From Prasinococcaceae sp. CCMP 1430 (taxonomy: Eukaryota; Plantae; Prasinodermophyta): a stretch of 64,000 nt of DNA. The translations under genes and the position numbers were made by a program. The notes beneath the pieces were generated by a model. The model was given only the letters and a program-made list of their open reading frames with translations, made no database searches and was not told the DNA's origin. Positions 3,144 to 63,318 of this stretch are shown here, one piece after another. Position 1 is the stretch's first letter. Each line of letters starts with the position of its first letter. Location of the stretch: positions 527,810 through 591,809 of the forward strand of contig RQSC01000028.1 of the NCBI GenBank assembly GCA_013416795.1. Reading direction: 5' to 3'.

Positions 3144-4400
3144 CTAGTCGCCGTAGTTAGAGCAGATGCCTCCCGCCCTCGCGCGGTCGTACCTGTCTTC
3201 GCAGTACGCCGGCCTGCCGCGGGCGTAGGCCGCAGCCGCCTCGCGATCAGCGACCGTGTCGTCGAGCTTGAGCAGCTCAACAGGCGTCTCCCGCGCGCCT
3301 GCGAGCTCCTCGGGAGGCACGAACACGAGCGAGGACACGCTGACCAGCAGCGTGGCCATGCCCACCGCCAGGCTGCGGCGCAATTTAGCGAGCACGGGCT
3401 TCACCTCGTACGTGCCCATCAGCCTGTCGCGCGCGAGTACCTCGGGGGGCTTCACGAAGGTCTGGCCATCGTACCACCCCGTCTGTCGCGATGGCGGCGG
3501 GCGGCGAGAGTCAGCGCGGGCGGGTGTGTGAGAGCAGCCGCGCGGGCGAAGCGGCGTCGGGGCAATCGGACGCGACGCACAGGGGCCAAAGATGGAGGCC
3601 CCTCGCAGAACGCGCGCGCGCGCGCGCGCGCGCGCTCGGCGCACCTCCTCGTAGTAGACCTTGGCCGAGAGAAGACGCTTCCCCACGTACGCCCACCCCA
3701 GGTACACCCGCAGCAGCAGCGCGCTCGGAAGCAGCGACGAGCCCGCCAGACCACACAAGAAGAACTCGGAGGGCTTTTCCACGGGGTCGAAGCTCGCCGC
3801 GGCGATCGGGGCAGCGAGCAGCACAAACGACGCAGCCCTGCGCGAGCGAGGCGCGCGTGTGCGAGGAAGGTGCGGTTCGCGCGGGCGGCGACGGGGGCGC
3901 ACGGACGATCGCGATTGTGTCACGGAAGTGTCAGCAGTGGGCGCGATGCAGCGACAACGCGGCGCGAAGGGTGGGGCGGGGTGGGGGTTCCATCTTCCGT
4001 CAACAGGCCTCCGTCAGCCAATCCCCGCAACCCCTCCGCCCTCGGCGGCGCGCCGCGCATGGCCGCGCACCAGCGGAGCCTCACGCGCCGACGCACCAGA
4101 TGAGGCCGAAGCGCTTCAGGTACGCGTCGACGGGCAGCTGCGCCCACGAGAACATGAACCCCTCCTTCAAATCGCGGTACTCGTTGATGGGACGCTGGTC
4201 CTTGGGCACCGCCAGCTCCATGCGCTCGAGCAGCACATCCGCCTCAGTCTGCCCGCCGCCGCCCCCCAGTTGAAGCCAATGGTCTGCTTCACCATGTTCT
4301 CCTCCTTGCGGCGATTGCCAGCGCACGGCAGCAGCACGGGGAAGCTCGAAATGGGCAGCTTCGCGCCACCCGCGAACAGCTCGTCCATGGAGAACGANGC
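3144..4400 (-). CDS. CGLD27: CGLD27 / DUF1230 family chloroplast membrane protein, at least 3 exons; start uncertain
   Basis: Exons encode [23 protein letters not shown] (~4100-4220), [23 protein letters not shown] (~3646-3830) and [21 protein letters not shown] (3144-3480). These match DUF1230 motifs. GT-AG intron at ~3481-3645. Confidence 0.88.
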
Positions 4401-14786: not shown

Positions 14787-16379
14787 GCCGCGGCCCCGCG
14801 CGCCGTCCTGCGGGCGGGCGGGCCTACCCCTCGCGGCGTGCGGCGCGCACGTGTGGCTGCGCGGCGTTGGCCACGATGCCACGCGCGCGCGCGCGCACAG
14901 GAGAGTGAGGGAGGGCGCACGGGCACGCACCCGGGCGCAGGCGCGGGCGCGGGCGCCCCCCCCCCCCCCAACAAGGGGCAAGGTTTCGCTAGCGCGTTCC
15001 CCCGAGGAGCGTCCCCGCGCACACCCCCAGCAACGCTTTCGCGGAGGGTCGCGATGCGAAATCACAACCGTGAAAAACACCGAAGAGAGCTTCCAGCGAG
15101 AGCTGCTCGCTGGATGGGCCGGGCCACCCCGCCGGGCGCGCCAGAGCGCGCGCGCTCGCGGTGGCAGGGTGTGAGCCGCCTTACGGGCGCCGCAGGGGCG
15201 CAGCTGCGCGGCCGGCCGGGGAGGGGTGGGTGGCTGGGTGGGGGAAAGGAATGCGCGCGTCGGCCGCGCAGCGTGGCGGGGCAGGGCGTTCGATCGATCA
15301 CCCCCACGCCCCGCGCCGGCCGGTGCGCCGCCGCGGATCGATCGGTGGGTCGGGCGGTCCGGACCGGTCGCAGCAGCGGAGAAGAAGAAGAATATCCACG
15401 CTCACATCGCATCCGCTCACGACGGGTCGCCGGACGCCGCGCGGCGCGCGGGCGCGGGGGTGGACGCGGACTGGCCCGTATTGGCCTGGCCGGCCGGCTG
15501 GCCAGCGTGTGCCCCGCGCCTGCGGGCGCGCGCCGCGGCCTTGCTGCTGTCTATCTGTTGCTCTGGCACCCGACTCGATTGAAGGCCACGCAGGCCCCTT
15601 CCGTCCCCTACCCCGCCCGCCCCGCTGCGTGCGCTGCGTGTTTTGTTTGCATGTTCCACACATCACATCACATCACACCACGTGCTATGGATGGTGCTGC
15701 CCTCGCCCATCGCCATCGCCCCCGCTCCATGCCTGGTGGGCGGCCGGGCGCCCGCCACCCCGCTCTCCCCTCCGCGGCGCCCGCCCGCCCGCACCCCGCC
15801 CGCGCGCCACGCAACGGCAACTCGCGCGCAGGTCGGATCGAGACTCCCTTCGGTGAATCCCCCATTTCGCCCTCCGTTCTCCGCCGATCAATCGCCTGCA
15901 AGCCACCACCAAAATCTCGTTCCGTCGATTTTACATAAACTATTAAATGAGTGTTAGATGCCTCAACATCGACGGATTGTATGGGATTAAAACACCACCC
16001 AGCCAAATCGACGGAAAGCCATTCCGTCGCGCCGTCGCGCCGATCGCCCCGAGGTTATCATGACCGACGCCTCCAACTTCGCCCTCGGCATGAAGCCCGC
16101 CATGGAGACACTTCGCTAGCGCGCATCGTACCAGATGCAATGCCAAGGGACGGTATGGACGCACTCTACTCTCCACCCCACTATACGCACGCGCGGAGTG
16201 CGCGGCCGCCGCGCGGCACGTCGCGCGCGCGCGCGCGCGCAGCGGCTGCCGACGCGGCCCTCGCGCAGTCACTCCGGGAGGACGTGTGTAAAACCCACGA
16301 CTTCATCCTCGTACGCGCCCGCAGCGCGCCGCGGGTGCCGCGCAAGCTCGTGGAGGCCGCTCCACCAACGCGCCCNNNN

Positions 16380-17603
16380 NNCGTGCCGCCGCGCCGCACC
16401 GCGCCCCCGCGCGCGCGCCTGCAGCGTGTCGGCCCAGGCCAACCTGAAGCCGGCGGGCATTGCCGCCGCCGCCGCCGCCTCGGTCGTGCTCGGCGCCAAC
16501 TCGGCGCTCGCGGGCGACCTCACCGCGGATGAGCGCGCGTCGCTCACCTACCTGCAGGTGAAGGGCACCGGCCTCGCCAACACGTGCGCCACCGTGAAGG
16601 CGGACGACAAGACCACCGACATTGCCGCGGGCACCTACGCCCTCGAGCACCTGTGCCTCGAGCCCACTGCCATCACCGTCAAGGAGGAGGACACGTGCGT
16701 TGCGCTGGCCAGCGCCGCGCCGTGCTTCAGCGTGTGCATGTGTCAGGGGAGAGAGAAAAGGGGGGGGGGGAGGGCGAAACGCAGCAGTGCGTTGCCGCGA
16801 GCCTCAGCGAGCAGCAGCTAGGGCGCCTCATGGCTGCGATGGCACGCGTGCGCGTATCCCGCGCCGTGAGAAACCCTCTCGCGCTGCTGCGCGTCATGGC
16901 GGATGCGCCAGCCCTGCACTGGGGTGGAGACGCCCGCACTGCCACGCCCGTTTTCTTGCGCTTGCCGCCGACCGCTGGAGCTGCGCTGTGGCGTGCGCCG
17001 TGGAGCGATTACCCCTCGCACGCCGTGCTGACATCAGCGTACGTCCTTCGCCCGCTCCGCCCGTACGCGTTCTCTTGCAGCTTCCTGTCGACCAAGCTGA
17101 TGACCCGCCTCACGTACACTCTCGATGAGATCTCGGGCAAGGCCACCGTGGGCTCGGACGGCTCGTTCTCCTTCCAGGAGCAGGACGGCATTGACTACGC
17201 CCCCACCACCGTGCAGCTGCCGGGCGGCGAGCGCGTGCCCTTCCTCTTCACCGTGAAGGAGCTCGACGCCAAGGGCAGCCTCGCGTCGTTCGGCGGCGAC
17301 TTCACCGTCCCCTCGTACCGCGGCTCGTCGTTCCTCGACCCCAAGGGCCGTGGTGGCTCGCTTGGCCGTGACGCGGCCAAGGCGCTGCCCGCCGCTTCGA
17401 CCGCCGACGAGTACGAGAAGGAGAACATCAAGGAGACCACGCCGCTGGCTGGCAGCATTGTGTTCAACACGGCGAAGGTCGACGCCACCACTGGCGAGAT
17501 TGCCGGCATCTTCGAGTCGATCCAGCCCTCGGACACCGACCTCGGCTCCAAGGCGCCCAAGGACGTGAAGATCGAGGGTGTCTTCTACGCGCAGCTGGAG
17601 TAA
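16380..17603 (+). CDS. psbO: Oxygen-evolving enhancer protein 1 (PsbO); 5' end obscured by an N-gap; intron at ~16695-17079
   Basis: [80 protein letters not shown] and [29 protein letters not shown]; lumen-targeting AxA motif SALA. Confidence 0.96.
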
Positions 17604-21616: not shown

Positions 21617-21731
21617 NNNNNNNNNNNNNNNNNNNNNNNNNNNNNNNNNNNNNNNNNNNNNNNNNNNNNNNNNNNNNNNNNNNNNNNNNNNNNNNNNNNN
21701 NNNNNNNNNNNNNNNNNNNNNNNNNNNNNNN
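21617..21731. other. Assembly gap (115 N) following a poly-G run
   Basis: Run of N directly visible; smaller N runs at 4398, 16376-16381, 26514, 37022 and 57897. Confidence 0.99.
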
Positions 21732-57971: not shown

Positions 57972-59385
57972 ATGGCCTCGATCCTACTCGTCGGCGGGAC
58001 CGGCCGCGTGGGCACGGCCGCCGCGTCGCACCTGCTGCGGCGGTCGGGAGACGTCCGCGTCACGCTCGCTGGCCGCGGCGCCGAGGGCAGGCGCGGAGCG
58101 GGCGCCGCGTACGAGGCGGCAATGGACGCGGGAGGTGCGTTGGCGCGGGCCGCTGCCGGCGCCCGCGCCGCCTGCCTGCCAGCCATGCGACCGCCCCTCT
58201 CTCGTCCGTCGCTCCTCTCGCGCGTCAACTGCTGACGCGCCGCGATCGCCTCCCTCTCTCTCCTTTGCCGCAGGCCCAGCGGACAGCAGCCGCGTGGCGC
58301 TGCAGCGGCTCGACCTGGACGCCAGCTCCCCCGAGCAGCTCGCGGCCGCCGTGGCGGGCTACGACGCGGTGCTGCACACGGCCGGGCCCTTCGAGAGCGA
58401 CGACACGCGGCTGCTGGAGGCGTGCATTGCCGCCCGCGTGCCGGTGTACTGCGACGTGGCGGATCCCATCGAGTACCTGGCCAAGGCGCGCGGTGAGGAG
58501 ATGAACGCGCGCGCGGCCGAGGCCGGCACGATGGCGCTCTGCGCCGCGGGCGCCTTCCCAGGCCTAAGCAACCTGCTGGCCGCCAAGCTGGCGCGGGACC
58601 TCGCGCCTGCTCGAATCGCCGACGTCGACTTCCAGTACTTCACGGCGGGCCTCGGCGGCTCGGGAGCGGTCAACCTGCTCATCACGAACCTGGGCTTCGG
58701 CGCGCAGCTGCCGCGGTACAGGGGCGGCCGGTACGCGCCGGCGCGCGAGGCGGGCGTGGGCGGCGGACGCGTCGATTTCTTCCTGAGCGAGGCCGACGCC
58801 AGCTTCGCGCGCGTGGGCACGCGGGACACGTGGCCGTGGCCGTTCCCTGAGGCAGCCACCGTCGCTGACCACCTTCGCATCAGCGGCGACTCCAACGCGT
58901 CGATGGGCACCGCGCCGGACATCTGGAACGCCGTGATGCGCGTCATGTGCGAGCGCCTGCCGCGCGACTGGTGGTCGGACGAGCGCTTCAGCGCCGCCTT
59001 GGCAGACTTCAGCAGGCCGCTCGTGGCGCTCACGGACGCGGCGGTGGGCGAGACGCATTGCATGCGTGTTGACGTGCGCGCCGAAGACGGGCGGCGCGCC
59101 TCCGCCGTGCAGGGCCACGACAGCTTCAGGAGGTGCGTCGGCCAGAGCATGGCCGAGTTCGCGCTAGACCTTCTTGCCAGGCGGGGCACCAACTTGTTCT
59201 CGCCGGGGGTGCGGTGTCCAGAGGGCTTGTACGAGTGCCAGGGCTCGTCGGAAGGTGCCGGCGAGGATCGTCCAGGAGCGTCTGCCGCCGAAGCGGCGGA
59301 TGCCCTGCTGGAGCGGCTATGCTCAACGCCGGGCACGTTCACCTACGCCGTTTCTGTCGGGCAGGTCGACGACAGCGCGCTGTGA
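57972..59385 (+). CDS. Saccharopine dehydrogenase-like NAD(P)-binding oxidoreductase, 2 exons
   Basis: Rossmann ILLVGGTGRVG, VLHTAGPF, YCDVAD, GAFPGLSNLL and FQYFTAGLGGSG; intron at ~58135-58273. Confidence 0.9.
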
Positions 59386-59440
59386 GTCTTTCGGCGAATC
59401 CGTCCATGTCGGCGGGCCTGGAGCGCATCTGCTGCTGCAA

Positions 59441-59807
59441 AGGGTGCGATTACAGTGCAAGAAGACGCAAGCGCAAGGTTGCGTAGCGCGCGTGTGTAAG
59501 ATCTAGGTTCGTGTGTGAGAGCGAGCTATCCACCCGCAGCGCGGCTGCGAGAGCGGCGCCTTGGGTGGTCGTGTGTGTGCACGCCGCACGCGCGGAGCAC
59601 GCATGTCGACGATGAACTGTGCAGGCCGTCGGCAAGGACCCGAAGGACCTTGTCCGTCGGCCAGCGGCTTGGGTCCGTCTGCGTGACCCGGTTGGTGAAG
59701 AGGTGATCGATGTCGGCTATGGAGAACCTGTGCGTACGGCCCAGGGTGTCGAACGCCAGCGGGAGGAACTGGATCCTGTGTTGCGCGCAGATGTCCGCGT
59801 AGCGCTG
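59441..59807 (-). repeat. Left arm of ~365 bp inverted repeat (retroelement 3' end, pointing left)
   Basis: Reverse complement of 62144-62509; the outer part is near-identical and the inner part more diverged. Confidence 0.93.
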
Positions 59808-60399
59808 GCGGTGGGCCTTGTAGAGGCGCTCCAGGCCCGCCGCGGTGAACGGGTTCGTGCCTGCCATGTCGACCTTGGCTGACGGATCCGTGATCTCGTC
59901 TCGCGGCGCCACCCAAGGATGCGCCTTCGGGTCCCTCCTGCACTGCCTGGTCTCTCGCGAGCCACTGATGCAGTACGTCACCGAGATCCGCAAGTAGACA
60001 GTCATTTACCTGATGACCTACCCCAGCACTGCCTGGTCTCTCGCGAGCCACTGATGCAGTACGTCACCGAGATCCGCAAGCTGGACCCCGACGCCATGGT
60101 CCTCTCCATCATCGACGACGTCGCGACGGTCTGCGACGGCGCCAAGGTCCCGCTGGCCAAGGCCACGGATCTGCTCAACGAGGCGATGGCCACAGTGGGG
60201 GTGACTTACCACGGTCTCGACTCTGACAAAGTCGTCACCTTCCGCCCCCACTCCGCCTTCCACGGCAAAGAGTCGACCGCGCTACCCCCTCCTCCACTCT
60301 CCACCATCCCGACCAAGCCTTCCGTCGAAGAACTTCGGGCCTTCATCTCGCTACTGGCGGCTGAGGAGCCCAAGTTGGAGCGGCGGGCGGCGGCAACGA

Positions 60400-61806
60400 A
60401 TGGCTCGCAAGGCAGTCAGCAACGTACACACACGATCGCCCCAGGCGCCGCTCTCGCGGCAGCGCTGCGGGCGGATAGCTAGCTTTCACTCATGCCAGTG
60501 GACGCGCCGCCAAAGTGGTCGCGCTCGCCAATCAAGCCTTCCGTCGAAGAACTTCGGGCCTTCATCTCGCTTCGCGTCTGTCAACGGGGCGAGTGGACGC
60601 GCCGCCAAAGTGGTCGCGCTCGCCAAGTCCCAGCAACGCAAGCTGCGCATGCACGTCCACCCTGACAGGCTCACCGCTGCCCGCAAGGAGGCGCTTGGCA
60701 ACGCCCTCCTCGACAAGATCGCCGACGTCAACTGCGTCCTCGATGCGGCTCTGCTCACCGTGGGCGACGGCAAGGCGGTGGTCGCCTACCTCGACTCCCT
60801 TCCCCCCGACCCCCGCACCTCCACCGCCGGATGCGCGCCAGGGGCGGTTCAAGGCGTTGTCGTCGTGGGCTTCCCGCTCGGCACCAAGGACTTCGTTGCA
60901 GGGGCTCTCGCGAAGAAGGACGCGGTGTACTACCGCAAGCTCACCGCCTGCAACCAGTTCTCCGCGTGGGGACACAACAGCGCAGCGCTCTTGCTGCTCC
61001 GTATGTGCGTCCACCCCATCAGCGACTACCTCCTGCGCGGCCTCTTCCCGGGCGGCAAGGGCGAACAGGACAGGTACGCTGAGCCAACACACTTCCTCGT
61101 GAAGCGTCACCACGCCCTGCTTCAGGCCACAGTGGACTGCGCGCTCGGCCAGATCCCGCCAGACGACACTCCGACCCGCACCGAGTCGCTGGCGAAGATC
61201 TTCCCCAAGCACGTCGGGCTTCCGATCTCCCAGGGAGGATTCGGTATGCGCGCCCCTTCCACCGTTCGCCTGCCGGCGTGGGTTGGTGCGAGGACTTCAG
61301 TCCTTCACCTCGCCACACGCCACCCCCTCGCTTGGCAGTACTTCACCCGCCCCGACACAGCGGGCGCTGCCCTGTACGAGGCCCTGCAGACCATGCTCAA
61401 CACCGACGACGAGCCCCTGGTTCCACCGTTTCCCGCGAATGCCGATCCGAGTCGGCCCAGTTTCCCCACTACTCCCCTTTACAACGCAGCTTACGCCGGC
61501 CACGATAAGTGCGTGCAGCTGCTGCTCGAGGCGGGCGCGGACACAAACACGGGCGATGTGAGATACGACATGACTCCTTTGAACGGTGCAACCGAGCTGG
61601 GTCACATTGAGTGCGTGCGACTGCTGCTGGAGGCGGGCGCCGACATGAACCAGCCAGACAAAGACAAGTTCACCCCAATTATTACTGCAGCCCGATGGAA
61701 CCGCGCAGACTGCCTCGAGCTCCTGATCGAGGCAGGCGCCGAAATTGAGAAGCGGGACCTTGGCGCCGTCGCAGACCGTCTCGACGTCGTCGATGATGGC
61801 AGCTAA
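60400..61806 (+). pseudogene. Chimeric ORF: J-like HPD segment + RT thumb + three ankyrin repeats
   Basis: 468 aa open frame; ankyrin repeats TPLYNAAYAGHDKCVQLLLEAGAD, TPLNGATELGHIECVRLLLEAGAD and TPIITAARWNRADCLELLIEAGAE at ~61468-61757. Confidence 0.7.
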
Positions 61807-62143
61807 GGGTGCGATTACAGTATGGAAAGACGCAAGCGAGAGGTTGCGTAGCGCGCGTGTGTCTAAGATGATGATGACGATGATGGAGAGGACCATGGCG
61901 TCGGGGTCCAGCTTGCTGGCAGTAGGCACACCTGCGGCTGCCTGACCGGCTCATCGAAGCCACCGTCAAGGACCGCTGCAAGCGCTTCCTCGACGACTCC
62001 GCCAACTGGGAACTGCTCCACAACGAAGCACACGTCGAGCTCGCCACCGCTGCGACAGAGGCGCAACAGTTCGTCGCTGGCAGCGACAGCAACGAACGGG
62101 TCATCTCGTCTCGCGGCGCCACCCAAGGATGCGCCTTCGGGTA

Positions 62144-62509
62144 GCGCTACGCGAAAACTCTGTGAGCACCACCACATCCAGTTCCACACGCTGGCGTTCG
62201 ACACCCTGGGCCGGGCGCACAGGTCCTCCAGAGGTGCCATCGAGCACCTCTTCACCAACAGGGTCACGGCGACGAACCCAAGCCGTTGGCCGACGGGCAA
62301 GGCTCTTCGGGTCCTTGCCGACGGCCTGCACAATTCATCGTCTGCATGCGTGCTCCGCGCGTGCGGCGTGCACACACACGACCACCCAAGGCGCCGCTCT
62401 CGCAGCCGCGCTGCGGGTGGATAGCTCGCTCTCACACACGAACCTAGATCTTACACACGCGCGCTACGCAACCTTGCGCTTGCGTCTCCTCGTACTGTAA
62501 TCGCACCCT
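62144..62509 (+). repeat. Right arm of ~365 bp inverted repeat (retroelement 3' end, pointing right)
   Basis: Ends ...CTGTAATCGCACCCT, matching AGGGTGCGATTACAG at 59441 and at 61806. Confidence 0.93.
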
Positions 62510-63318
62510 ACACTACTATAACTTGCTTGATAACTTCTTACACAGGAGCGCGGCAAACCTCAATGCTGCAGCTCGACACGGCACTCTCTCTCTCTCCGCA
62601 AATCGCCATTGTTTGTTATCACGTTCTCAGTCTCTCTCCCCTCCCTCTTTACGCTCTCTCCCCTCCCTCCCCCACCCACCCACCCACCCACCCACCCACC
62701 TGCTCCCCCGTCCGCATCCCCCCCTGCCTGCGAGCGGATAACGCTCGTGGCATTTTTTAGGGTTTACGCCGAAAATATCGCGATGCGCTCCAACCGCAAC
62801 CCACAAACGCTGAAACCGCCATCAAATCACACCGAAACGAACGCGAGCTGCAGATTTGAGGTTTCGAGGCGTTAATGCAATGCATGCTGACGTTGGATTC
62901 GGATCGATAGGGTCTGTGGGAAGAGGGTGCGCGGGGCGCCGGGCGTGGGGCGGCGCCGGCCAGCCGCGGGGTGGGTGGGTTGGTGGGGTGTGGAGCTGGG
63001 AGGAGAGCTGCGAGGACGCCGAAGAGTGGCTGAGGAGGGAGGCTGCGCCACTGCGCGCGCGCGCGCGCGCGCGCGCGCGCGCCTGGCGCCGCGGGGTCCC
63101 CTCCCTCCCCCACCCACCCACCCACCCACCCACCCACCCCGAAACCCCTTCTCTCTCCCACTGGTGGCAGCACCCCGTGAAGGACTGCGTGTACCTCATG
63201 TCTGCCGCGCCAGGTAGACATCCCAAGGCGTCTCCCAAGTACAACAAGGTCTGCACGCTCTCCTTGCCGCGCGAGGCAGGTGGCGTCGTGTCCACACATG
63301 CATCAACGCGATGGCTCG

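Follow-up and report, generated by a model that had tools for sequence, protein, structure and literature searches.

An outward-facing inverted repeat of two retrotransposon 3' ends in a green alga most likely results from antisense insertion into an older copy of the same family

The window analyzed here, a 64-kb stretch of DNA from a GC-rich alga, contains a 367-bp inverted repeat made of two retrotransposon 3' ends. We favor, at a probability of roughly 0.6, the reading that the locus is a nest of dead fragments of a single retrotransposon family in which an antisense copy lies inside an older copy. The inverted repeat most likely arose by backward insertion of the younger copy into the tail of the older one rather than as the termini of a new element with terminal inverted repeats (TIRs), and there is no sign that the 3.1-kb block is mobile as a whole.

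Results

The inverted arms are diverged retrotransposon 3' ends

A repeat search of the window detected inverted arms at 59441-59791 and 62159-62509 (351 nt, 91% complementary), which gapped blastn lengthened to 59441-59806 and 62143-62509 (367 nt, 91.0%, E = 7e-146). Arms of about 365 bp, as originally predicted, are thus real. Both translate into the C-terminal region of a single protein family. The left arm, L (59441-59806, minus strand), carries nuclease-like C-terminal codons up to a stop near 59526-59528, after which some 90 nt of 3' UTR run to the shared terminus. The right arm, R (62143-62509, plus strand), is the 3' part of the proposed older plus-strand copy and has a 1-nt frameshift near its start. 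Exact matches to the 15-mer terminus occur three times in the 64-kb window (59441-59455 and 61806-61820 on the minus strand, 62495-62509 on the plus strand) as against a mean of 0.06 in shuffled sequence, and four copies have this one common terminus. An 8-bp hairpin predicted in the terminus by consensus folding showed no covariation. Also borne out was that both arms have nuclease-like codons, a stop and a common terminus, that neither 3' end carries poly(A) and that no direct repeat or target duplication surrounds the block, the flanks of which differ.

The arms differ at 33 positions, mostly in the coding part, and share 143 nt of UTR with zero difference. The differences look neutral (7, 11, and 9 at the three codon positions; 17 nonsynonymous and 5 synonymous). 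At the protein level L and R are only 79% identical and are not sisters in the tree; the closest relative of R is the P0027 copy (91% protein identity) and not L. The private branch is 0.16 for L vs 0.07 for R.

The left copy runs past 59441 into a short tail, TTGCAGCAGCAG, probably followed by ATGCG. This tail (59431-59440, minus strand; TTGCAGCAGC...) is not poly(A); with 59424-59430 included, the sequence is ...CAGATGCG. In the independent copies L001 and P0165 the terminus is likewise followed by this tail, in P0165 in antisense (RICCKGCDYS...). In contrast, R ends at the shared terminus without it. Upstream of the arm the left copy continues through its nuclease core (59807-59889, minus strand; TDPSAKVDMAGTNPF...YKAHRQ) to its 5' truncation point. 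A tblastn search with ENA relatives reached 59891, and the alignment also covers this core.

Element sequence lies beyond the left arm

A further fragment, Z, is found at 59395-59430 on the plus strand. It comprises 36 nt of the nuclease-like region, reads ANPSMSAGLERI and is proposed to be the 5' remnant of the older plus-strand copy. Its local alignment score to 59857-59822 is 24, a value reached by none of 300 shuffled sequences and none of 296 control 93-mers from the genome. The STSAG-type motif of Z matches the canonical ANPSTSAGLERL of P0027, P0030, and P0031, and Z was also found as an inverted pair in the repeat search of the window. Note that its last 7 nt (59424-59430) could equally be part of the left-copy tail.

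When both are placed on the element by way of the contiguous left copy, the end of Z corresponds to 59822 and the start of R to 59806. Z and R are collinear, share one orientation and are separated by 15 nt of the element; by a rough estimate, the chance of such collinearity and adjacency is on the order of 1%. We therefore read Z and R as one older 5'-truncated copy. The left copy and the block had originally been taken to end at 59441, with the arms as the termini of a LINE-derived unit having two 3' ends. This description is not supported: the tail of the left copy continues, element sequence (Z) is present outside the left arm so that the retroelement-derived block reaches beyond that arm, R is nearest to another copy and target duplication around the block is absent.

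The interior is a chimera of family fragments and a foreign ankyrin segment

The insert at 59431-62142 is composed of RT-to-thumb sequence, ankyrin sequence, inverted RT with a nested insertion, zinc-knuckle sequence and a short RT piece. Its interior is broken by stops and frameshifts. Breakpoints were defined from fragments of the element only. The largest piece, segment W (59890-61470, plus strand), spans the RT from VISSRGATQGC via IIDD, an HPD-containing helical insert and the thumb to ...PPFPANADPSRPSFP; the canonical order was taken from P0162-P0165, P0016, P0017, and L001. The joint between L and W (59889/59890) is head-to-head, with 2 nt shared. W contains a locus-specific 58-nt duplication at 59937-60080 (59937-59994 equals 60023-60080 at 98%), which is absent from the four independent relatives P0162-P0165; the copies are separated by 28 nt of AT-rich filler (59995-60022) that has no source in the window. 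At 60426-60571 a small mosaic replaces 78 nt of canonical sequence present in L001, P0017, and P0162. Its first part (60426-60492) is 67 nt of L001-type 3' UTR; the other two, 60494-60531 and 60532-60571, duplicate 60589-60626 and 60314-60352, respectively.

W is followed in frame by an orphan ankyrin fragment (61471-61750, plus strand; 280 bp, about 2.8 repeats; Pfam Ank_2, 1.6e-31) with neither a start nor splice signals, and an open frame at 60205-61803 joins the thumb to the ankyrin sequence. Elsewhere in the window, no ankyrin match fell below E 0.01. A protein search with the thumb-ankyrin junction returned only generic ankyrin proteins of 31-51% identity, and gave neither a donor nor an independent copy of the junction. 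An in situ host exon caught between two insertion clusters was rejected because neither side of the nest has ankyrin sequence.

Segment V (61751-61916, minus strand) is an inverted 79-nt RT piece, 98-100% identical to 60076-60154, that is interrupted by M. M (61800-61877, minus strand; 78 bp) is itself a nested insertion, in which the final ~68 nt of the element are joined to about 10 nt of GAT-repeat filler; a 9-bp target duplication, CGATGATGG, lies on either side of it (61791-61799 and 61878-61886). The translation of segment Y (61917-62069, minus strand) contains ...SGSRRCAYCQQAG, an incomplete CX2CX4HX4C zinc knuckle that resembles the N terminus of P0041 (BLASTP, 14 of 22 residues identical, E = 1e-6; also by tblastn), and the canonical sequence upstream of FVAGSD in P0162-P0165 differs from Y. 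The suggested origin of Y is based on that single chimeric metagenome protein. Segment U (62070-62142, plus strand) is a 73-nt RT piece, FVAGSDSNERVISSRGATQGCAFG, the last 43 nt of which match 59890-59932 (42 of 43). The overlaps among U, V, and W are 98-100% identical vs 93-95% for W and L001, and V and W share a private residue, the A of ...DGAKVP..., where relatives have D or V.

Two other accounts of this interior were discarded. The sequence at 61917-62142 cannot be contiguous upstream RT with a deletion to the nuclease region, as P0162-P0165 show RT only at 62070-62142. A simple inversion of an internal segment fails because W has sequence that the proposed minus-strand copy lacks, from RT motif B to the start of the V equivalent.

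The family resembles R2/CRE-like elements at the motif level

The RT was recognized from the motifs QGCAFG, IIDD, and VGFPLGT. The alignment has C..C...H....C followed by SDLVITD...LDVT...YKAH.QRYA...FHPLAFDTLG. Pfam searches of six window pieces and ten relatives gave ankyrin matches only; RVT_1 was not matched by the window pieces or by P0015 even at E 10, and a 976-aa relative had neither an RVT_1 nor a PDB match. PDB sequence searches with P0015 (phmmer), P0024 and an alignment profile of the nuclease-like region found nothing. In the ESM Atlas the clusters nearest to P0015 were RVT_1 families (score 0.97-0.98), and no named family was found for the C-terminal domain. The AlphaFold model of the CCHC and nuclease-like region had a pLDDT of 36.7 and was unusable. 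Rfam gave no match in 59300-62700 at E up to 1 (R2 3' UTR, HDV-like ribozyme, hammerhead). Judged from its motifs (RT, CCHC, a restriction-enzyme-like C terminus and no poly(A)), an R2/CRE-like element is plausible; the CRE-like assignment first made thus stands as motif resemblance, with profile searches giving no RVT_1 match.

Hallmarks of target-primed reverse transcription are present: a fixed 3' end, 5' truncation in the L, R, L001, and P0008 copies and a short duplication (M). No common target site was obvious in the very small sample of four junctions, which lie in a host 3' flank, nuclease-region codons, RT codons and the 3' end of another copy. The family has only 15 relatives among 1.84 billion representative proteins, and a metagenome scan gave one related locus, L001 (1 kb). 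In P0165, from an independent metagenome assembly, sense RT is joined directly to an antisense tail and terminus. In L001 and P0008 a 3' end is directly followed by a 5'-truncated copy, and P0003 and L001 have internal deletions from the RT to the nuclease-like region (...AGAV|VVITDTK).

Discussion

A nest probably formed by backward insertion

In the sequence of events that we propose, a 5'-truncated plus-strand copy of about 420 nt (Z plus R) would first have inserted just downstream of an ORF resembling saccharopine dehydrogenase, as the topology suggests. A second retrotransposition in the opposite orientation would then have struck this copy within the codons ...GLERL/YKAH..., with loss of 15-22 nt of target. 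The 3' OH on the Z side would have primed at the 3' tail of the RNA, possibly aided by a match of 6 of 7 nt, to give L. As L faces left and R faces right, the outward-facing inverted repeat would be a by-product. The interior may derive from convergent cDNAs with four primers, namely the DNA 3' ends of Z and R and those at either end of a captured ankyrin fragment. These cDNAs would have been joined in pairs in the manner of twin priming, and additional template switching would have occurred within W. Finally, M, a 5'-truncated copy, would have entered V at a later time. M has a clean 9-bp target duplication, and therefore the family inserts into its own copies.

Several observations support the nest. 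Z shares its STSAG-type motif with P0027, which is also the closest relative of R; P0165 has the same kind of junction in an independent assembly; and L001 and P0008 have junctions of a 3' end abutting a 5'-truncated copy. The near-identity of U, V, and W, the residue private to V and W, the twin-priming geometry where L meets W and an ankyrin fragment that has no partner in the window also support it. Against it stand the small size of Z (only 36 nt) and the longer private branch of L: if all change in L postdated insertion, L would be older than the copy it supposedly split. Moreover, 143 nt of identical UTR require a conserved UTR type or gene conversion, and the four-primer model needs large gaps between priming and stop together with an unexplained capture of ankyrin DNA.

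Alternative explanations

It is unlikely that the insertions were independent and just happen to be adjacent. U and R would then form one internally deleted plus-strand copy, L a separate 5'-truncated minus-strand copy with other fragments between them, and Z an unrelated scrap in a coincidental position. RT-to-nuclease deletions are known in the family (P0003 and L001) and the long private branch of L fits an old separate copy, but the orientation of Z, its collinearity and its 15-nt adjacency to R are left unexplained, as are the near-identity of U, V, and W and the missing target duplications of separate copies. Of the ideas in the original prediction, its fallback of two independent insertions comes closest to our findings, except that the insertions are nested rather than side by side. 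It is improbable that an assembler or polisher stitched reads of different repeat copies into a chimeric path. The many sharp-edged, near-identical interior pieces of 38-67 nt and the single Ns and short N runs in the window would fit such an error, and Craig et al. (PMC8557442) warn that structures of this kind confuse short-read assemblies. However, genuine insertion is indicated by the 9-bp target duplication that flanks M and by the collinearity of Z with R across the split, complement-only and mirror blocks are absent from this region, and the same junction classes occur in independent metagenome assemblies. The published assembly of Prasinoderma coloniale is PacBio-based (PMC7455551), which counts only if the window comes from it.

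We think it very doubtful that a single event made both arms, either by priming of the RNA 3' end from both sides of a break or by fold-back template switching on one RNA. The common terminus, the 143 nt of identical UTR and interior orientations that fit convergent priming would agree with such an event, but not the 33 arm differences concentrated in the coding part, the affinity of R to another copy (91% identity as against 79% to L), the position of Z beyond the left arm or a tail that is on L and absent from R. Priming from both break ends may nevertheless describe how the interior was built, although it is not the source of both arms from one RNA. The originally proposed non-autonomous element family with LINE 3' ends as TIRs, for which the ankyrin sequence would be the cargo, is hardly credible. 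A 367-bp inverted repeat does bound the block and a foreign ankyrin fragment does lie in an open frame. Yet no target duplication surrounds the block, no second copy of the arrangement exists in the window or among the related metagenome proteins, and 0 of about 35 such proteins span the head-to-head (L and W) or ankyrin junctions; the arms have diverged and are not the outermost element sequence, and the interior carries stops and frameshifts.

Comparison with known systems

Backward insertion into an older copy, our preferred reading, places the locus among nests of non-LTR transposons, in which dead, 5'-truncated members of one family sit within each other, M with its clean target duplication being an example, and in which an inverted repeat is a by-product of antisense insertion. 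It differs from them in its insert, a chimera that changes orientation three times and includes a foreign ankyrin fragment. The joint of L and W resembles L1 twin priming: a sense 3' segment lies head-to-head with an inverted segment from upstream in the RNA, as L starts in the nuclease core and W (RT motif B to the end of the thumb) maps upstream of that point, and the inner ends are the 5'-most points. Capture of genomic DNA and pairs of inverted cDNAs at one junction are likewise reported for complex L1 insertions (PMC11702581). For L1, however, a 12-18-bp duplication is found in place of the 15-22-nt deletion seen here, and the gap from priming to stop is 1-10 bp rather than hundreds of nt. 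Unlike L1, the present element has a putative restriction-enzyme-like nuclease and no poly(A).

With R2, CRE and NeSL elements the family shares, at the motif level, the domain order of RT, thumb, CCHC, D...D-x-T...K-x3-(K/R)Y and a C-terminal F-x-P-L-A-F-D/E-x-x-G, the lack of poly(A), 5'-truncated copies and many junctions that look like template jumps. It departs from them in having no Pfam RVT_1 or PDB match, no Rfam R2 3' UTR or ribozyme, no evident specific target site and an HPD motif within the helical insert of its RT. In Penelope-like elements (PMC8557442) an adjacent inverted 5'-truncated copy likewise yields inverted repeats around the unit, and partial head-to-tail tandems and short tails at the ends are also found. 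There, however, the inverted copy sits at the 5' end of a full-length copy and not inside the 3' part of an older copy as here; moreover, the present family has no GIY-YIG nuclease or hammerhead by Pfam and Rfam, and its C-terminal motifs are of the D...D..K type. According to Craig et al. (PMC8557442), non-LTR elements do not show such tandem and inverted structures. It is unlikely that the family habitually integrates in a Penelope-like manner, with priming from multiple ends, template jumps, capture of foreign DNA and a preference for its own copies, perhaps guided by pairing of the non-poly(A) tail (...CAGATGCG) with the target. In that case the family would ordinarily generate tandem and inverted arrays.

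Implications

An inverted repeat of two retrotransposon 3' ends is an expected product of antisense nested insertion and has little structural importance by itself. Nests of this kind can mislead gene prediction because the frame at 60205-61803 fuses the thumb to ankyrin sequence, and the locus should be annotated neither as a new TIR element nor as an ankyrin-RT fusion gene. Almost every copy of this poorly described family that we examined is a mosaic, and the family may therefore preserve a natural record, of modest value, of how an R2-like enzyme of an early-branching green alga jumps between templates and primes from several ends.

Inverted arms and the family that they encode

The left arm (L, 59441-59806) and the right arm (R, 62143-62509) were compared by repeat search and alignment, and matched as inverted copies over 367 nt at 91.0% identity (E 7e-146). 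The inverted repeat is genuine, as the original prediction had claimed, and far above chance. The terminus said to be shared by both arms was found at 59441 (-) and 62495 (+); this 15-nt sequence has a third occurrence in the window, at 61806 (-), against an expectation of 0.06. Both arms encode the C-terminus of the same protein family (90-120 codons), followed by a stop and an untranslated region (UTR) of about 90 nt; the C-terminus, the stop and the lack of poly(A) agree with the earlier description. Complement-only and mirror blocks were sought in the region and none was found, and nothing elsewhere in the 64-kb window resembled the region.

Public data contain very few members of the family. 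A query of the helical insert plus thumb found only 15 relatives by HMMER among 1.84 billion representative proteins, mostly short marine metagenome assembly fragments of 73-98% identity; all 15 are unnamed and nearly all are from ENA marine metagenome assemblies. Word searches gave about 20 further fragments, and the majority of the sampled fragments (P0001-P0041, P0162-P0165) are mosaics. One distant relative, P0015, has 976 aa, and its nearest neighbours in the ESM Atlas are RVT_1 clusters. The canonical order assembled from the relatives is reverse transcriptase (RT) motifs (...FVAGSDGNERVISSRGATQGCAFG...SIIDDVETVCDG...), an HPD-containing helical insert, a thumb (VVVGFPLGT...), a linker, a CCHC motif and a C-terminal region (SDLVITD...LDVTFTDPSAK...YKAH.QRYA...FHPLAFDTLG). 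This layout resembles, at the motif level only, that of R2/CRE-type elements with a restriction-like endonuclease. The CRE-like assignment proposed earlier is plausible at this level. Rfam and sequence searches of Pfam and PDB with the family pieces returned nothing usable. Pfam RVT_1 does not detect the family, and an AlphaFold model (pLDDT 36.7) was not usable. The G+C content of the window is 60-75%.

Divergent arms, with element sequence outside one of them

Comparison with relatives indicates that the arms do not derive from one RNA, the origin by two-end priming or fold-back that had been put forward. The R protein is 91% identical to the metagenome protein P0027 but only 79% identical to L, the best protein match of L is 82%, and L and R are not sisters in a tree of modest support. 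Their 33 differences lie mostly in the coding part, with none across 62345-62487. This 143-nt UTR stretch is identical to 59463-59605, the adjoining coding part being about 15% different, and L001, a related 1-kb metagenome DNA locus, differs from the same stretch at 18 sites. As the family has at least two UTR types, shuffled among coding variants, the identical stretch may be a modular type shared among shuffled copies, or may reflect gene conversion between the arms.

Directly left of L is the tail of the left copy, TTGCAGCAGCAG, probably with ATGCG after it; L001 has this tail behind the terminus too, and so, in antisense reading, does the metagenome protein P0165. Beyond the tail lies a 36-nt fragment (Z, 59395-59430, +) that aligns to the nuclease-like region 59857-59822 with a score of 24, reached by none of 300 shuffles and none of 296 genomic controls. 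Z reads ANPSMSAGLERI, where the canonical counterpart is ANPSTSAGLERL, and its variant motif is that of P0027, the closest relative of R. With element sequence outside the left arm, the arms are not the termini of the retroelement-derived block that they had been taken for.

Because the left copy is contiguous across this region, it served as a ruler for element coordinates: on it, the end of Z corresponds to 59822 and the start of R to 59806, so the two are collinear, share one orientation and are separated by 15 nt, or by 22 nt should the final 7 nt of Z, which are ambiguous, belong to the tail. For a several-kb element, a fit of this kind would arise by chance in about 1% of cases, a figure that we reached by reasoning rather than computation. 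Most simply, Z and R would be the halves of a single older plus-strand copy, truncated at its 5' end and later split by the insertion of 59431-62142. We assign a probability of about 0.6 to a nested order in which an antisense insertion ending in L split the older Z-R copy. Independent insertions, the fallback offered originally, come closest to this result, but they would be nested and not adjacent.

Contrary to the proposed order, L would be the older of the two copies if the arms diverged after insertion. L has the longer private branch in the tree, and the L-R changes look neutral (7, 11 and 9 at the three codon positions; 17 nonsynonymous, 5 synonymous); we nevertheless weighted topology above divergence over 89 residues. 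A cargo-carrying unit bounded by terminal inverted repeats, the headline interpretation of the original prediction, is not supported even though the inverted repeat itself is confirmed. No target duplication flanks the block, an absence noted from the outset, no second copy appeared in the window or among the related metagenome proteins, the arms have diverged, element sequence lies beyond one of them, and the interior is broken.

Anatomy of the insert and its flanks

Including its tail, the left copy spans 59431-59889 (-), from the 3' end up into the nuclease core. Segment W (59890-61470, +) runs from RT motif B through the end of the thumb and is followed by an ankyrin fragment (61471-61750, +; Pfam Ank_2, 1.6e-31). 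Segment V (61751-61916, -) holds a 79-nt RT piece 98-100% identical to 60076-60154, and Y (61917-62069, -) encodes a truncated zinc knuckle resembling the metagenome protein P0041 at its N-terminus (14/22 identical, E 1e-6). U (62070-62142, +) is a 73-nt RT piece; of its final 43 nt, 42 are the same as at the beginning of W. U, V and W probably came from one source, since they are closer to one another than W is to L001 (93-95%), and V and W have a private residue in common.

W carries two locus-specific scrambles that independent relatives do not share. The first, a 58-nt duplication, flanks a 28-nt AT-rich filler (59995-60022). Lying between the two RT copies, the filler is 46% G+C within a region of about 68%; the window contains no source for it, and four independent relatives lack it. 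In the second, a 146-nt mosaic (an L001-type UTR piece plus two local duplicates) takes the place of 78 canonical nt.

The ankyrin fragment has no start or splice signals and is the only ankyrin sequence in the window, so we take it as captured and reject an in-situ exon. An open frame of 533 codons (60205-61803, +) reads from the RT insert and thumb directly into about 2.8 ankyrin repeats. Its appearance as a fusion protein was discounted, as inverted RT sequence forms the end of the frame and the ankyrin part is an orphan lacking any partner in the window.

A 416-codon, saccharopine-dehydrogenase-type-like ORF (58135-59385, +) ends about 10 nt before Z, and thus the entire nest, Z through R, lies in its 3' flank. 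Just right of the nest, a C-rich 42-nt block with (CCCA)n occurs twice in identical form, at 62659-62700 and 63097-63138, a spacing of 438 nt. G-rich copies complementary to it lie at 62969-62995, and around 63050-63080 there is a (GC)n tract.

Similar junctions in the family

Nested within V is a 78-bp insertion (M, 61800-61877) consisting of the element's last ~68 nt and a short filler. It is flanked by a 9-bp target duplication (61791-61799 and 61878-61886), which is not something that an assembler would invent. In independent metagenome assemblies, P0165 has sense RT followed by antisense tail and terminus, L001 and P0008 have a 5'-truncated copy placed after a 3' end, and P0003, P0004/P0019, P0006 and P0164 have internal deletions or reordered joins. 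The recurrence of these junction classes is evidence for real events in the family; note that these assemblies are short-read and some joins are possibly chimeric. The published Prasinoderma coloniale assembly is PacBio-based (PMC7455551), and a real structure would be favoured if the window derives from it. Single or short runs of N occur at 4398, 16376-16381, 21617-21731, 26514, 37022 and 57896; a purely long-read assembly would not usually contain them, so that they make this origin of the window less certain, and masking or gap filling may be their cause.

A stretch of about 50 nt of RT (codons SIIDD...DG.KVPL; 61751-61916 and P0165) was hit three times independently, by the target duplication of M, the end of V and the P0165 junction (≤3 nt from the V end). 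Cleavage or priming may favour this site within the element.

A possible priming scheme and its parallels

On the premise that antisense-reading element strands are first-strand cDNA, the orientations would yield one consistent priming solution. The plus-strand 3' OH of Z would prime L at the tail of the RNA, where target CGCCTCT and tail complement CGCATCT match at 6/7 positions. At the ankyrin fragment, the minus-strand 3' OH of its left end would prime W and the plus-strand 3' OH of its right end would prime V, which would then jump to Y; the minus-strand 3' OH of R would prime U. Convergent cDNAs would join at 59889/59890 (2 nt shared) and about 62069/62070. We hold this detailed multi-end scheme only tentatively and think it somewhat more apt to be wrong than right.

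The L/W joint has the geometry of L1 twin priming as described in PMC11702581, which also reports captures of genomic DNA and, at single junctions, pairs of inverted cDNAs. The simple twin-priming model does not account for the target deletion, the large priming-to-stop gaps or the capture of ankyrin sequence. Structurally the nest also resembles the tandem and inverted arrays formed by Penelope-like elements; according to Craig et al. (PMC8557442), such arrays are not seen for non-LTR elements. The family is not Penelope-like, since it lacks the GIY-YIG nuclease and hammerhead ribozyme. The outcome is an ordinary transposon nest, with its closest mechanistic parallels in L1 twin priming and complex L1 insertions.
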